Shown in pieces: positions 32,437 through 53,016 of a stretch of 64,000 bases of DNA. The translations under genes were made by a program, and so were the position numbers. This DNA comes from Trichosphaerium sp. ATCC 40318 (taxonomy: Eukaryota; Protista; Tubulinea). Within the stretch, counting starts at the first letter, position 1, and each line of letters opens with the position of its first letter. A model generated the notes under the pieces. It was not told where the DNA came from and searched no databases. It saw nothing but the letters and a program-made list of their open reading frames with translations. The stretch lies in the NCBI GenBank assembly GCA_038496445.1, contig JALMLS010000320.1, forward strand, positions 248,001 through 312,000, given 5' to 3'.

Positions 32437-33068
32437 AGTTTGGACTTCTTTATTGTTTGTTTCAGTCGGTTGTGTTCTTTCACGTGAACTGTCACGTTTA
32501 TTGCAACTTGCAAGAGAGTTGGCTAACATTCAATGAACCAATAAAATTGAAGACCCGCAGGAGCCTCCTATAACTGTCAAGTTAATCACATTAGTTAATT
32601 GTTGGAATCAAATAACGGTTCACATGAAATAAACAATATTTCTTCAATATAATTTCTGACTGCATACTAAAAAGTCCTACGAATGGTTTTGTTGAAGGTC
32701 TTCGTGTAGTGAAGTTTTATCACTTTCATACCTTCTCATGTGAAGTATTGGAAGTTATACATTTGTATATTGTATTATATTAGTTCACCTGAAAAACGTG
32801 CTTTAAAATACAAATATAAATGCTATGTTGGTACCTTTGCCTTCAAAACTATGCCAAGCTATGCCTTTATTGAATGCAGTCCAGTCTTTTTGTACTCCAT
32901 TAATTAACCGCCCTGAATTGTTTGTTGAATAAAACTGCTTCAACAAAATTTTTCAATTTCGATTTTCCGACTTGTTTTTTTTTGTTTTCTTTTCTCATAA
33001 TTGATTTGTTGGTAACTTGCGCTCCAACCTGGCCGGGGATTAGACTTACAGCGAATTATAACAACCAA

Positions 33069-33140
33069 GGGTCTGTAGCTCAGCGGTAGAGCAGTCGGCT
33101 GCAGTCCGATCGGTCGTCGGTTCAAATCCGATCGGGCCCT
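33069..33140 (+). tRNA. tRNA-Cys(GCA)
   Basis: 72-nt cloverleaf, loop CT-GCA-GT, GTTCAAATC T-loop, U73, followed by a T5 terminator. Confidence 0.95.
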
Positions 33141-33266
33141 ATATCTTTTTGTAGCATCCCGTTCTGTACACAAAACATGCAAAGAAGTAAAGGAATAGTA
33201 TTTGCAGACTACTCAAGATTATTTTTGGTATTTCATAGCGGAATATTATTTTATTTAAAGTTTTTG

Positions 33267-34936
33267 TTACTTAGGGCCCATCATGTTCATAACAGTTGCT
33301 CGTAATTGTTGCACTTGTTCACGCTATAACATTGGTTAGTTCTTGTCATTAGTGCAGTTCGCATACTTGTTGTGGTGGTAAGGATGCAACTTGTTGAGGC
33401 GTAAGCGTTATTACTTGTTGCAAAAGTGCTTTCGCATCATTGTTCATATTCATTAAAAATTGTGGCGAGTTCATATTACCAAGATTTAACATAGACGGTG
33501 GAGCGCCAGGAGGCGGTGCACCTCCAAACTAAAGAGGTTAGTGAGAAAACAAGGCAAAAGATGCAAAAGGTTATAGGGCCCGATCGGATTTGAACCGACG
33601 ACCGATCGGACTGCAGCCGACTGCTCTACCGCTGAGCTACAGACCCTTGGTTGTTGTTGATAAGGAAAAATATTATCGATACAATATTGAAAAGGAAAAT
33701 ACGCACTCCGCCAGGCATAGGCTGCCCTTGTGGTGGTCTGTTGTTTCCGCTTGGTGGAGGATAATATGGTGGAGGTCCGCCAGGCTGCATACGATTCTGT
33801 GGTGGTTGGTTCATTGGAGGTGGCCTCATGCCACTAGGAGGCATATTCATTCTATTAGGACCAGGTGGACCGCTTCTCATTGGGTTCATGCCAGGCGCAC
33901 CTGACATATTAGGTGGACCTAATAATAATATAAACAAAAAAAACATGTGTACTTTAGCCTCTTTGCACTTACCTGAACCCATAGGCATAGCTCCTCCTTG
34001 TACATGCAATTGCTTTACAAATAAATCAGCTTCAACAAACCGTAGTCGATAGAGTAAGTTACATACTTGTGCTTCTGTGTTATTAATAATTCCTAATTTT
34101 ACTTGTGCTTGTAGTAATGCGTAGGCAACAGCTGGATTATTCAGTAGTAATTGTCGCGCTGAACCTGGATCTTGTTGTGCCAATTTCTAACAATAACAAA
34201 ATGTCAAAAAAAATAAATGTTGAAAATAAAAAACAATCTCCGCCTAGATGTCTTCGCGTGCCTTCATTTGAAGCATTATATCATACAATTGTTTTAACGT
34301 CATAGCATCTAATATTTTAGCAACTTGCTCAGGCTATTGACGCGTGTCAGAACAAAATAGCTCACAACTACAAAAAAAACCAATCATCGTACATTTAACG
34401 GTTGTCCAGGGTTCATTGCAGGTAGTTGAGGCAAAACGCTCTTCTTTTGCAGGTGTCAGTTTGAGTACAAGTTTGAAATAACGTACTTTGTTACTTCGCC
34501 AATTTCCTTCTCCCTGGCCTTCTCGCTTCTCGTTTTCGGCGAAATCGACGCGTAATTGGCGTCCCATAAATTCGGCTCCATCCTGTTTGCGTTTTAGTCG
34601 ATAATTTATCCTACACTAGCACGTACAAGATTTTTCATGGCGGATTGAGCCGTTTCTGGATCTCTAAACTCGCAAAAGCCATAACCTCTTGGCTTTCCCG
34701 TTTCTCTGTCCCATACTAGCCTAATTCACGTTAAAAAAGGTCCACACACTGCTTTGACGCGCCTAAATTTTACAACCTACAATACATCAGATACGCCACA
34801 ATTACAAACGTACTTGACCAACAGTCTCAAAAAACTCTTTTAACTGCTGCTCTGTAGCATCAAACGGAATATTCCCAACTAACGACTATTAAAACAATAT
34901 AATCCTTTAATCAGTACCAAACACAGAGCGACTCAT
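33267..34936 (-). CDS. CSTF2: Cleavage stimulation factor subunit 2 (CstF-64/Rna15)
   Basis: [46 protein letters not shown], hinge [19 protein letters not shown], and a C-terminal [15 protein letters not shown] domain. Confidence 0.92.
33575..33646 (-). tRNA. tRNA-Cys(GCA), identical second copy inside a CSTF2 intron
   Basis: Exact reverse complement of 33069-33140. Lies in intron 33529-33706 on the host strand, with T4 runs downstream. Confidence 0.95.
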
Positions 34937-35365
34937 CGGTTTGTAGGGGCTAAGAACGAAACAATAAATTATATATTCAACGACATTCGCTCAGTCTTGG
35001 AATATTCCCGTGCAGAGAATATATAACTGACACGTGAAAATACTCCTGGCGGCTAGGCTACTGAGCCAGTTTCCCTCTTACCAAAAGAGTACGACATCTC
35101 GTGATGTTTGCAACTAGGCAACATTCATTCTATATTGTAGCATGTGCCACATGTTAATTGTGTTTACATTGATTCTTCTCACTTCTATCCTTAGCCTCCA
35201 CCATGTTCGAAGAATTTATAGCTTGAAACACATTTGACAAGCACGTCGATGTGCAAGTGACACGTGCATAAAATCATGTTAGTCACAAAATGTGCAAAAC
35301 GGTGGTTGCGTCTCGTGCCTCCTATCAGTTACGACAGCCAGTAGTACACCATCAAACACCGACAA

Positions 35366-35458
35366 GATACGAAGTATAAAATTGAGCCTAATTCAATCGC
35401 CTTAACCACTTGGCTACTCTCCTGTTGATAGGAGAGGCGGGATTCGAACCCACGAGAG
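35366..35458 (-). tRNA. Circularly permuted tRNA-Leu(UAG)-like gene (3' half precedes 5' half)
   Basis: Minus strand reads ctctc-GTGGG TTCGAAT CCCGC-CTCTCCT-A-tcaac-AGGAGAG-TA-GCCAAGTGGTTAAGGC-G-ATTGA ATTAGGC TCAAT. The 7-bp acceptor stem is perfect across the linker. Confidence 0.8.
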
Positions 35459-35784
35459 TTTGTTTTTTTGTTATTTGGTGTGACAGCATACTGGGGGTAT
35501 GAGACACGGTGACTGAGATTATTGCACCGCACTGAAAGAGAGAACCAACACGTTTAAGTACACGTAATAGTTGACAGAAAAAAAATTGTGGGATTAGCTT
35601 TCTGCTAAAATTAGCACAACGCTGATTCAAGGATTTTAAATGATAATTATCATCGTGTTATCACGTGTTTGTTGTGTAGTTTTTTTTTATTTTACATTAA
35701 ATGGTTTGTTGTACAATCGCGAAAGCACGCACTATGGTAAACAGTGGTTTTTTCAGCAATGAAAAGAATTACAAGTTTTTTTTC

Positions 35785-36550
35785 TTTAACTTGCAAAGTC
35801 TCCATATGAGTGATCAAGAAACTCAAGCTTTACCTGTATAGTTCCTGTCACTTTTTTCCTATCTCTACCACAAAGAATATATTTTCTGCACGTGACCAGA
35901 AGTTAAAAATAAAACCTCGAAAAGAAAAAAAAAGCAAAAAGTCATACTTCGTGACAACTTCCGTTTTTGCCGTTGATAAATCCTCAGGTGGTATTTGGAA
36001 TTTACCCATAAAATCGTCTCTGGATAATAAGTCTTTATCCCAACACTCCAACCGAACATAAGAATTTACGTTCACTTCCCTAACCACCATCTTTTAGTCT
36101 TTCAACAATATCTTCAAAAAAAAACCCGACAAAGTCAAAACACCAAGAAGGTTATAACGTACTGGAAGGTGAAATCTTCGTACCACGTTGGATTCTACAT
36201 AGTACAGTAAGTACAATAATCAGTTCAAACACAAAAAAAGGGCTGAGGACTGTATTTAAACGAAAGCAAGGCGTTGGGCTTGGTTTTTGTTGACTGATTG
36301 GTTTTAAATGTTGTAGTACAATTATTACGCCATTTCTGGTTATAGGTCGTATGTTTTGATACGTACAAGAGTTTTAGGCTTTGTTGTTGTAGTCTGTTTC
36401 TGAGACCCGACTTTAATAACTACATACGGGTCTGAAAACCCGTTAGAGTCCTTTGATACTAGATTTGTGCCTTTATCGACTATACAAATACCATAAGCGC
36501 CAAACATAATTATTTGCAATTTAATTACCAGATATCTGTAGTGTACCCAT
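35785..36550 (-). CDS. Single C2-domain protein
   Basis: NLVSKDSNGFSDPYV, NPTWYEDFTF and ECWDKDLLSRDDFMG. End is approximate. Confidence 0.85.
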
Positions 36551-36945
36551 GTGTTTATCAATATTAAGCGTATTAAAACAAATTGACTGGACTTGAGCTG
36601 TTTACTGGCTTAAACAAAAAACCAACACGTCAACTTCTCAAGGCCTTCTTTTTATCTAAACACGTGGGTCAAGAGCAGTAGTGAATCACTTTGTGAATCA
36701 ATTGGTACGGCATAGAGCACCTTAATTACCTTGATTCTAAGAACAGCAATGAGTTTGAGTGCAACGGTCAAAACGTTATGTGAACAAAAGTCAGCTGTCA
36801 AAAAAATGTTGGATATCCAGTTTTTGTTCACAGAAGATGTTGCAGAGAATCTCGCTGCCTCTGTGAACTTCGTATCCAATTATGTAACAGTCCTTTAACA
36901 AATACAGTAGAGTCAAAACAAACGCAGAGATACAGAAAAGTATTA

Positions 36946-38004
36946 TTATTTGACATCTTTAGACTTGATTCTCTTTGTTTGTCTTACAAGTTCTGCTATT
37001 GTAATATTTTCGTCATCATCCATTTGAACTGCTTTACGTTTGTTGATATCCTTCTTAGATTCTTTCGCTTTCTTCTCGAGGTTTCTCTGTCTCACAGCAA
37101 TGGACTGCTTTACTTTTTTTAACACGTGGTTTTTTGTTCTTACAGTCTTAATGTCACGCAAGACTAAGCTTAATCTCGTTCGGATATTACACCCAATATC
37201 CCTCTCTATACTCTTCTCAGATGAGACTTTAACCTACAGGCAATAATAAGAAAAGTTGCTGAAAAGAGATATGTACTAGAGCATGTTGTAAAGTGGTATT
37301 CGTCTTCGGACCAAGAATGAACAGAGATCCAGATTCCATTGCTACAAATAGATGTGGTTTTTCTCCTTTCTTACGTAATTGGAGTTCTCTTGTTTCGCCC
37401 AGAGACAAGATAAATATAGGACTCCCTCAAAGAAAACGTCAATGTCATGATAAAACCTAAGAAAAAAACCCGAAAACGAAAGTTTCATAAAGTTACCTTC
37501 TTTTATATCCTCCATTTTATCATTATGCCAACCAATATAGTCCTCACCACTTAGATACTTTGTACCAATCACGTGATTTACAACAGGCGCTTCACCATTC
37601 CACAATACATTATTTCTAACAGATACCACTAGATTAGAAATATCCGGAACATTTTTAAAGCTTCTATAGGCTAGAACGCTTTCCCACTGCCATCCAGGAT
37701 AATGATATATCCTAACGTTATCTGGAAGGCCATCTTCGTTTTCTCCTAGTATATTTTAAGCGATAAAAACTGAAGAGAAATTGCAGTTACCTTCAACAAG
37801 AAAAAACTTCGTTCTAGGTAACTCATTTCCTCTAAACTTCATCCAGTTTGCTTCTCGTGGTGCACAAGGCGCTTTATCTAGAAGTGTTGATAGTAGTGTA
37901 GATGGTTTAACTTGTTGAGATTGAAGGAAATTAGGTATGTAATAAGAATCTGGTCCGTATTTTGTATGACTTAGTGAAGAGTCATTGCGAATGGAGAAAG
38001 TCAT
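36946..38004 (-). CDS. AlkB-like 2OG-Fe(II) dioxygenase
   Basis: YLSGEDYIGWHNDK (HxD), ILSLGETREL, GSLFILGPKTN..QH and RLSLVLR. Confidence 0.8.
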
Positions 38005-51750: not shown

Positions 51751-52038
51751 TCAAACCAAAAAAATACTTTATGGAAAGGGAATTTATGTGAGTCCTTGTT
51801 AAGCTTAACTACCCAACATTCACAAAACCTACCTTAGAAAGTATCTATTGTTACCACTGCAACTAATAATACGGTACAATACATACGAGATGGTAGCTAC
51901 GGTCTAGAAAAGTAAAAAAATAAAACACGTGATTGCTAACCGATGCATTTTTTTTCATATTTCATTACTTTGGTTACCAACGGTTTTTTTGGCAGAGAAA
52001 TTCAGTCAATCCGTTTAAAAACAATTTATCAACGCAGC

Positions 52039-53016
52039 ATGGAGAGTATGCTATCTACAAAGGACAAAAAAGACTTCTTTCCTACAGATACATCAGCTAA
52101 TATCAAACTTTTATACATGCCCACAGAGATATTAGCTTATTTACTCGAGTACACAGATCGCTCTGATAGATTTAAGGTATCTGAAAGCTGTAAACGATTA
52201 TCAGATATCATACACCATCACGTTGGATACAACAGCATTATAATAAGCTCGAGAGAAAGTTTTTCTCTTCTTCACAAAAACCCACTGTTAAAAAACACAA
52301 CTATCTGTCTTTATTGTTTCAGGCAAGCAACAGACAAAGATATTTCTTTTCTTTCTGGTGTTCAATCACTTGAAATGTTTGAGAACAACAGCATTACAGA
52401 CTCAGGCTTAGAACATATTTGTGGTGTAAGTCGCTTAATGGCGGTTAAATGTGCAGGTATTAATAACCCATTATTTTCACATGTGCTTACTTACTTGCAA
52501 TGCTTTTTAGGCATCACAGATGTAGGAATATCAAAGATTGCAAAGCACTTGAAATATTTGGTTCTGCATCGATGTGAGCAAGTGACAAATGAGGGTCTAC
52601 GATCACTCGCAGGAGTTCCAAATGTCAGTTTAAATCATTCACTTATTACGGATGATGTTTTGTCTTGTTTGTCAGGTGTTCACACCATTGAGTTATATGG
52701 TTGCAAATATATAACAGACAAAGGTATTTCAGCTCTGAGAGGTGTACATTCAATCAATTTGGATGGTACAGCTGTGACGGACAAGGGGGTTTCAGCTTTA
52801 GCTGGCGTACATACAATATGTCTTGCTTGGTGTAAGGGTATCAATGGTGAATGTATGAAAAGTCTCTCAAATGCATACGAGGTCAATTTATCAAGAACAG
52901 ATGCAACAGATGATTGGCTTGTTCCGCTTGCCAATGTCAAAGAAGTGTACATTTTCCGTTGTGACAACATAACAGATGAAGGAGTAAAAGTGCTTAAAGG
53001 AAGTGTGTACAGATAA
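52039..53016 (+). CDS. F-box/LRR protein (probably one short intron, ~52457-52510)
   Basis: LLYMPTEILAYLL..SCKRL F-box and GVHTIEL..ITDKGISAL repeats. Confidence 0.85.
   Translation: MESMLSTKDKKDFFPTDTSANIKLLYMPTEILAYLLEYTDRSDRFKVSESCKRLSDIIHHHVGYNSIIISSRESFSLLHKNPLLKNTTICLYCFRQATDKDISFLSGVQSLEMFENNSITDSGLEHICGVSRLMAVKCAGINNPLFSHVLTYLQCFLGITDVGISKIAKHLKYLVLHRCEQVTNEGLRSLAGVPNVSLNHSLITDDVLSCLSGVHTIELYGCKYITDKGISALRGVHSINLDGTAVTDKGVSALAGVHTICLAWCKGINGECMKSLSNAYEVNLSRTDATDDWLVPLANVKEVYIFRCDNITDEGVKVLKGSVYR

Follow-up and report, generated by a model that had tools for sequence, protein, structure and literature searches.

A transcribed permuted tRNA-Leu(UAG) gene with its break in the variable region in a heterotrophic protist

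Organization and detection of the permuted tRNA-Leu(UAG) gene

The window, i.e., the whole 64-kb stretch of DNA analyzed here, carries on its minus strand a tRNA-Leu(UAG) gene in which, as read from the sequence, the 3' piece precedes the 5' piece. The 3' piece (35454-35429) consists of C48 (35454), the T-arm, the 3' acceptor strand CUCUCCU (35436-35430) and the discriminator A73 (35429). The T-stem is formed by nucleotides 35453-35449 and 35441-35437 and encloses the T-loop UUCGAAU (35448-35442), and an exact B-box is located at 35450-35440. The 5-nt linker UCAAC (35428-35424) makes the acceptor stem a closed hairpin, and CCA is not encoded. The 5' piece (35423-35381) begins with the 5' acceptor strand AGGAGAG (35423-35417), directly followed by U8 and A9, a class-II D-arm containing the A-box (35414-35399), G26 and an anticodon arm (35397-35381) with U33, the anticodon U34 A35 G36 (35390-35388) and G37. 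Both pieces were also recognized by ARAGORN and by the covariance model described below.

The nucleotides that follow the anticodon arm (35380-35366) constitute a candidate variable arm, with UU, a 4-bp hairpin AUAC-UUC-GUAU (35377-35367) and C35366, which could act as C48. ARAGORN draws this region as the V-arm of the re-ordered molecule; the hairpin alone is too small for a statistical test. An internal T4 run is found just past the anticodon stem (35381-35378). The two acceptor strands form 7/7 Watson-Crick pairs, in agreement with the initial annotation, in which these strands had been described as pairing perfectly. The remaining hallmarks of a tRNA-Leu were found intact as well: A73, U8, A14, G15 (a C that can fill position 48 is present), G18 G19, U33, G37, the G53-C61 pair, the T-loop UUCGAAU and a hairpin at the position of the V-arm. 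The break had been assigned to the variable region, and this can be stated more exactly, i.e., it is located between the V-type hairpin and the T-stem, at approximately position 47/48 or 48/49.

In its native order the gene escapes the standard programs. ARAGORN found nothing at the permuted locus, and ARAGORN and Rfam at gathering score together identified two tRNA-Cys genes and nothing else in the 64-kb window. With RF00005 in E-value mode the locus scored 21.4 bits compared to a threshold of 29, with the V hairpin wrongly taken as the T-arm. When the halves were re-ordered, which was one of the checks proposed along with the initial annotation, ARAGORN returned a canonical tRNA-Leu(tag) with scores between 103 and 119 in 245 of the 312 variable-region fillings tried. 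The re-ordered 83-nt molecule with the hairpin as V-arm scored 114.4, compared to 118.2 for the window's tRNA-Cys. We also used a covariance model in permuted order (T-arm, acceptor hairpin, D-arm, anticodon-type arm) made from phage and metagenome elements only, with none from the window. This model matched 35381-35453(-) over its full length with 67.9 bits (E 1.4e-14, filters off, 64 kb), a score that is inflated since the training elements were gathered with a D-arm word identical to that of the window locus. The second-best match in the 64 kb scored 17.6 bits.

The exact B-box and the D-arm word are each unique in the window. No partner half, flanking repeat or second copy of the permuted locus was found within the 64 kb, and the earlier statement that a normally ordered partner half is missing nearby is thereby upheld. 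A D-arm-like word with three mismatches (34678-34695) lies within an exon of the neighboring gene and was rejected as a chance match. Exact-pattern scans of metagenome and viral contigs identified no close relatives of the locus, and nothing was on record when orthologous loci were sought via some of the neighboring proteins. The sequence, the re-ordered ARAGORN score and the permuted-order covariance model bear out the permuted gene proposed in the initial annotation, and confirm that the permuted tRNA-Leu(UAG) gene is real and far beyond chance.

The two tRNA-Cys(GCA) genes (33068-33141 and 33574-33647) are located 1.8 kb from the permuted locus. They form an inverted repeat with 92-nt arms (33060-33151 and 33564-33655) that are 98% complementary and 412 nt apart, and the genes are followed by T5 and T4 runs.

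Transcription and flanking sequences

Four public runs were placed on the region 33800-37800. All of them behave as RNA, with GT..AG introns of 39-87 nt being skipped; all introns seen are thus very short. Two minus-strand genes were found in the region (~33800-34957 and 35800-37715), and the permuted locus is located in the gap between them. In the first of these genes three joints from the same donor side were observed across runs at 34724-34812, with skips of 59, 86, and 87 nt and extra letters between, which points to alternative splicing or strain differences.

The permuted locus is represented in one of the runs (X4). A 145-nt contig with a depth of 778 is collinear with 35348-35492, with one differing letter, and crosses the leader, the linker, the trailer, and both half boundaries unbroken. 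Two further contigs of 54 and 55 nt cover 35468-35521 with depths of 846 and 309, and a sequencing adapter joined at 35523 marks the 5' end of a minus-strand RNA. Altogether, these contigs describe a continuous RNA of ~176 nt from ~35523 to ~35348, which comprises the leader, the 3' piece, the linker, the 5' piece, the hairpin and an 18-nt trailer. The neighboring spliced mRNAs have depths of 3-13 in the same run, and the RNA from the permuted locus is roughly 60-450 times deeper. Depth is zero at 35006-35273 and 35542-35675. The silent flanks together with the high depth show that the locus is an independent, real transcription unit. In the other three runs the neighboring mRNAs were covered, while the permuted locus was not, which fits a non-polyadenylated RNA.

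The X4 run also contains a contig with eleven extra A's joined at 35459, and leader fragments end at 35463-35459. These A's are either a true A-tail on a cut-off leader or the result of oligo-dT priming on the genomic A-run. Position 35492 was considered as an RNA end and rejected, since it equals 35462 + 30 and is explained by the word length at the point where the contig branches in the A-run.

The sole form seen in the RNA data is the unprocessed collinear RNA. Among the listed contigs of the four runs, which as contigs drop rare forms, we found neither back-joined (circular) RNA nor RNA with a mature junction. The collinear contig is unbranched at the half boundaries, and differently joined RNAs are therefore either rare or were not captured in the X4 library. 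Ordinary RNA libraries capture tRNAs poorly. As in known permuted tRNA genes, the transcript is a single collinear RNA, and it continues through the T4 run that follows the anticodon stem. The independent RNA contig keeps the order of the DNA at both junctions, which excludes the assembly artefact that had been raised as a concern.

The 5' leader of 69 nt (35523-35455), as given by the X4 contigs and by folding, is made up of 16 unstructured nucleotides, a hairpin (35507-35480) and a 25-nt A/C-rich stretch up to the T-arm. The hairpin has a folding energy of -6.9 kcal/mol compared to -2.2 +/- 1.5 for shuffled sequences, none of 200 being as good. Its stem letters, AUAC/GUAU, are identical to those of the V-type hairpin 35377-35367(-), so that leader and trailer could also pair mutually; this was noticed post hoc, and the probability of its arising by chance is roughly below 1%. 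The leader had been described as CAA-rich, like those of both tRNA-Cys genes. The stretch before the T-stem does resemble the stretches preceding these genes; however, the RNA starts elsewhere, at 35523, ~70 nt before the T-stem. In length, the leader comes close to the sum of a normal leader and positions 1-48 of this tRNA (58 nt). This length would place the B-box ~73 nt from the RNA start, the normal spacing for a B-box-driven polymerase III unit.

The trailer kept in the abundant RNA is 18 nt long (35365-35348), and no T-run is found at the RNA 3' end at ~35348. The contig 35348-35492 explains all depth in its bin, and depth downstream is zero. The downstream stretch (35347-35287) leads to two T4 runs (35299-35296 and 35290-35287), which by their sequence are candidate Pol III terminators, and no RNA was found at these runs in the RNA data examined. 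Since no T-run marks the observed end and the T4 runs are located further on, this end has probably been processed.

Our geometric scan found no bulge-helix-bulge (BHB) at the V/T junction, which agrees with the initial annotation, where no clear BHB could be drawn. The sole BHB-like geometry involves 35351-35338 and 35494-35481. It is located far from the junction, is one register of a longer helix, and would leave ~50 extra nucleotides in the variable region; 12 of 300 shuffles gave as many such geometries. A 16-bp helix between leader and trailer was present in the minimum free energy (MFE) folds (z -1.6 and -2.2), and in the 228-nt fold extending to the first T4 run the long leader-trailer helix was found in the MFE and centroid structures alike (z -2.2). 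As a terminal stem this helix was rejected, since 172-229 of 1000 shuffled sequences gave duplex energies as good as its own and since the leader hairpin competes with it. A long trailer hairpin, considered as a giant V-arm at the RNA 3' end, was weak (-4.6 kcal/mol, z -0.5) and was rejected as well.

No similarity to the missing halves was found in leader or trailer, where local alignments scored 8 compared to shuffle means of 11-13. A recent tandem-pair remnant was therefore rejected, as the flanks carry no trace of the missing halves and the 64 kb contain neither a repeat nor a partner half. Once the acceptor hairpin is opened, the two pieces are predicted to co-fold and to be 11-19 kcal/mol more stable together than apart, which makes a two-piece tRNA physically possible, as in two-piece tmRNA.

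Relation to known permuted tRNA genes and tRNA-like elements

The 34 permuted tRNA genes listed in a review (PMC3978253) belong to one red alga, four green algae, one nucleomorph, and Thermofilum. They are broken at 15/16, 20/21, 37/38, 50/51, or 59/60, and their intervening sequences measure 1-74 nt. The four break positions named in the initial annotation (20/21, 37/38, 50/51, and 59/60) were right, with 15/16 to be added from this review. In the pathway outlined there for all known permuted tRNAs, the splicing endonuclease cuts the BHB formed by leader and trailer and a ligase circularizes the RNA, whose acceptor loop is then opened by RNase P and RNase Z (PMC3978253). A 2026 review still places permuted tRNA genes in algae and archaea only. 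Full-text searches of the literature for permuted tRNA genes in amoebae, in phages, or with a variable-arm junction gave none. A V-region break had been suggested to represent a new permutation class, and indeed neither such a break nor a non-algal eukaryote was found on record. The locus is a transcribed permuted tRNA gene at an unreported break position, in a eukaryote lineage that is new for such genes.

The window locus shares the order of 3' piece before 5' piece on one strand with the permuted genes of Cyanidioschyzon merolae, Ostreococcus, Micromonas, and the Bigelowiella nucleomorph (Soma 2007; Maruyama 2010; PMC3978253). In the Bigelowiella nucleomorph the intervening sequence is 5 nt, as it is here (PMC3978253). 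The algal and nucleomorph genes also resemble the window locus in that CCA is not encoded and a single collinear RNA is made. The known cases include a disproportionate number of class-II tRNAs (Leu, Ser), and the window locus is also a tRNA-Leu. However, their junctions carry a BHB whereas the V-arm/T-stem junction of the window locus does not, the known permuted hosts are algae while the present host is an intron-rich protist, and the long leader (~70 nt) with a hairpin is unlike that of the algal permuted genes. The permuted tRNA-iMet and tRNA-Tyr genes of Thermofilum pendens (Chan 2011, PMC3218864) have a very short intervening sequence like the window locus, but are broken at 59/60, encode CCA, and have an archaeal endonuclease of broad specificity available (PMC3218864).

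Two families of non-coding RNA have a related order. In YrlA (RF02553; bioRxiv 10.1101/312249), T-arm, closed acceptor-type hairpin and D-arm follow each other as in the window locus; in contrast to the latter, the ends of YrlA leave via the anticodon stem, there is no anticodon loop, and the acceptor-type stem is of variable length. The window locus scored 24.7 bits with RF02553, compared to a gathering threshold of 69, and only the T-arm, acceptor and D-arm parts aligned. In two-piece (permuted) tmRNA the acceptor 3' piece also precedes the 5' piece, and the molecule works as two base-paired RNAs without ligation, which is a precedent for a two-piece reading of the window locus. The score with permuted tmRNA (RF04321) was 11.9 bits compared to a gathering threshold of 47, and the window locus differs by having no tag reading frame and by having a full D-arm and anticodon arm. 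With respect to permuted tRNA genes, the window locus has the gene order, the cloverleaf and the precursor but not the BHB.

Metagenome and viral contigs were scanned for a B-box followed by a class-II D-arm within 12-42 nt, which gave 150 loci. Where the acceptor strands did not match, both elements belonged to ordinary neighboring tRNAs in 108 of 125 loci. Where they were complementary, neither element was part of an ARAGORN-called tRNA in 22 of 28 loci. Two of these 22 (L116 and L042) were rejected as permuted genes, as Rfam identified them as tandem paralogues. Some of the remaining loci look like the algal type, with a break in the anticodon loop, and others have an intact anticodon-type arm and, like the window locus, ends in the variable region.

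One family, termed Class P (alignment A1), consists of 33 distinct elements of 135-155 nt from IMG/VR contigs. Its members include L132:1410-1544 (the same element as L087:5183-5317), L133:1699-1834, L204:1422-1572, L154:4873-5025, and 29 more. They have a T-arm, a covarying 7-bp acceptor hairpin, a D-arm, and then a 5-bp stem with a 7-nt loop. In the alignment 99.5% of the cells are paired. Covariation was observed for each of the seven acceptor pairs, and none of 500 shuffles reached the observed measures. Most members encode CCA after position 73, and the invariant ends form terminal helices that are linked to the tRNA core by A/C-rich single strands. The elements are found near tRNA-Met genes and phage genes (DnaB-like helicase, antirepressors) and on Bacteroidota MAG contigs. 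No match to Class P was found in Rfam or in the phage collection searched, and no paper on the family was found. Class P has the same topology as the window locus, with an intact anticodon-type arm and A/C-rich single strands, and it was the Class P core model that gave the inflated 67.9 bits for the window. The family differs in that U33 is lost, CCA is mostly encoded, and the elements are those of prokaryotic viruses. Its invariant end sequences are absent from the flanks of the window locus. To our knowledge, bacteria have no tRNA-splicing endonuclease. Class P thus shows that this topology is maintainable without BHB processing, and both a two-piece tRNA and a tRNA mimic stay alive as readings of the window locus.

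Permuted tRNA genes were also observed inside tRNA arrays of large viral contigs (L148:243-294, L128:3044-3114(-), L130:1465-1514, and L126:735-786), and all four are missed by ARAGORN. By eye, the gene in L148 (a 347-kb contig) is a tRNA-Tyr(GTA) broken in the anticodon loop and located between two tRNA-Leu genes. In the L128 gene (a 133-kb contig) the anticodon arm (ACG) is unbroken and the leader is complementary to the trailer, which makes this a variable-region break like that of the window locus. As permuted tRNA genes escape the standard tRNA finders, the tRNA sets of protists and phages may be under-counted.

Possible fates of the 176-nt RNA

The chances are about even, in our judgment, that a functional tRNA-Leu, either ligated or in two pieces, is made from the ~176-nt RNA. 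The precursor would be made by RNA polymerase III, placed by the B-box ~73 nt downstream of the RNA start. The transcript would probably reach the T4 runs at 35299-35287, and its 3' end would then be trimmed. RNase P could cut before A1 and RNase Z after A73, both of which require only the acceptor/T-arm half, and the acceptor hairpin would thereby be opened; CCA would then be added, as in the algal permuted tRNAs. The ~70-nt leader and the 18-nt trailer would have to be removed and position 47/48 joined to 48/49, which would need an activity other than the canonical BHB cut. Alternatively, the pieces could stay unligated, with tertiary contacts and the 7-bp acceptor stem holding them together. 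The result would be a class-II tRNA-Leu of 83 nt for CUA and CUG codons.

The high expression, the near-normal tRNA score and the 5-nt intervening sequence, which is within the proven range, favor a tRNA precursor, and so does the setting, with intron-rich host genes around the locus and two normal tRNA genes at a distance of 1.8 kb. Function is suggested above all by the tRNA-Leu features, which are flawless even though the flanks hold no trace of the missing halves. The main argument against it is that neither a junction signal nor a processed product was found. The internal T4 run after the anticodon stem and the 3' end at 35348, which has no terminator, also count against a tRNA precursor.

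The same RNA could instead be the end product, i.e., a stable tRNA-like non-coding RNA in which the acceptor is closed by the UCAAC loop while leader and trailer close the molecule. It would then work by mimicry, for example by binding a tRNA-recognizing protein as the bacterial YrlA RNAs do, and the phage family may do so too. We regard this as possible but somewhat doubtful. The collinear unopened RNA is alone seen, and abundant, as such an end product would be; however, pre-tRNAs are usually over-represented relative to mature tRNAs in ordinary libraries, and a precursor-only signal therefore proves little. YrlA was the best Rfam match in E-value mode (E 0.0038), with the order of T-arm, closed acceptor and D-arm common to both, but its score remained below the threshold and the Ro-binding helix was unmatched. 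The layout of a tRNA core, A/C-rich single strands, and a terminal helix recurs in the 33 covarying phage elements and in L128, and the 228-nt fold of the window locus retains its long leader-trailer helix. Against this stands that the terminal helix is not above shuffled sequences and competes with the leader hairpin, and that the observed ends at 35523 and 35348 differ from those of the helix. Furthermore, a mimic needs no anticodon loop, yet U33, UAG, and G37 are retained along with the exact 7-bp acceptor and A73, whereas U33 is gone from the phage family.

Permuted tRNA genes are usually taken to arise when a tRNA gene is duplicated in tandem and the outer halves are then lost. The same scheme has been discussed as the origin of YrlA (bioRxiv 10.1101/312249). 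A tandem or rearranged tRNA-Leu pair that lost its outer halves in this way may have left a mere relic, in which the B-box still drives the synthesis of a functionless RNA that is turned over. The leader fragments ending at 35463-35459, A-tailed or internally primed, are as expected for a decaying RNA, the leader is as long as a normal leader and the missing 5' part together, and the lack of a junction-processing signal is also in line with a relic. On the other hand, the event must be old, since the flanks carry no trace of the missing halves, and after such a time two flawless pieces, in which all 7/7 acceptor pairs form, the B-box is exact and the anticodon loop is intact, argue for selection. 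The RNA level is also high for a relic, and we find this explanation improbable. That the locus is an assembly artefact or a chance resemblance is extremely unlikely, as the 145-nt RNA contig is collinear with the window past both half boundaries, differing from it in one letter, and the ARAGORN and covariance scores are far above chance; no point was found that counts for an artefact.

Permuted tRNA genes are known from a few algae, one nucleomorph, and one archaeon, and they have always been explained by a splicing-endonuclease cut at a BHB. If the RNA described here matures to a tRNA, this would call for an endonuclease of very different specificity, for another cut-and-join pathway, or for two-piece tRNAs. 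In the two-piece form the acceptor stem and the leader-trailer helix would hold the pieces, as in two-piece tmRNA. We tentatively propose, as a less than even prospect, that V-region-broken permuted tRNA genes without a BHB represent an unrecognized class, which would comprise a multi-gene set in this heterotrophic protist and, of independent origin, the elements of Bacteroidota phages, and whose RNAs would be completed either by a new cut-and-join pathway or as two-piece (nicked) tRNAs.

Elsewhere in the window, an intronless open reading frame of 357 aa at 51943-53016 encodes an F-box/LRR protein. One of its few named relatives is a protein of Hyperionvirus, a giant virus, with 26% identity.
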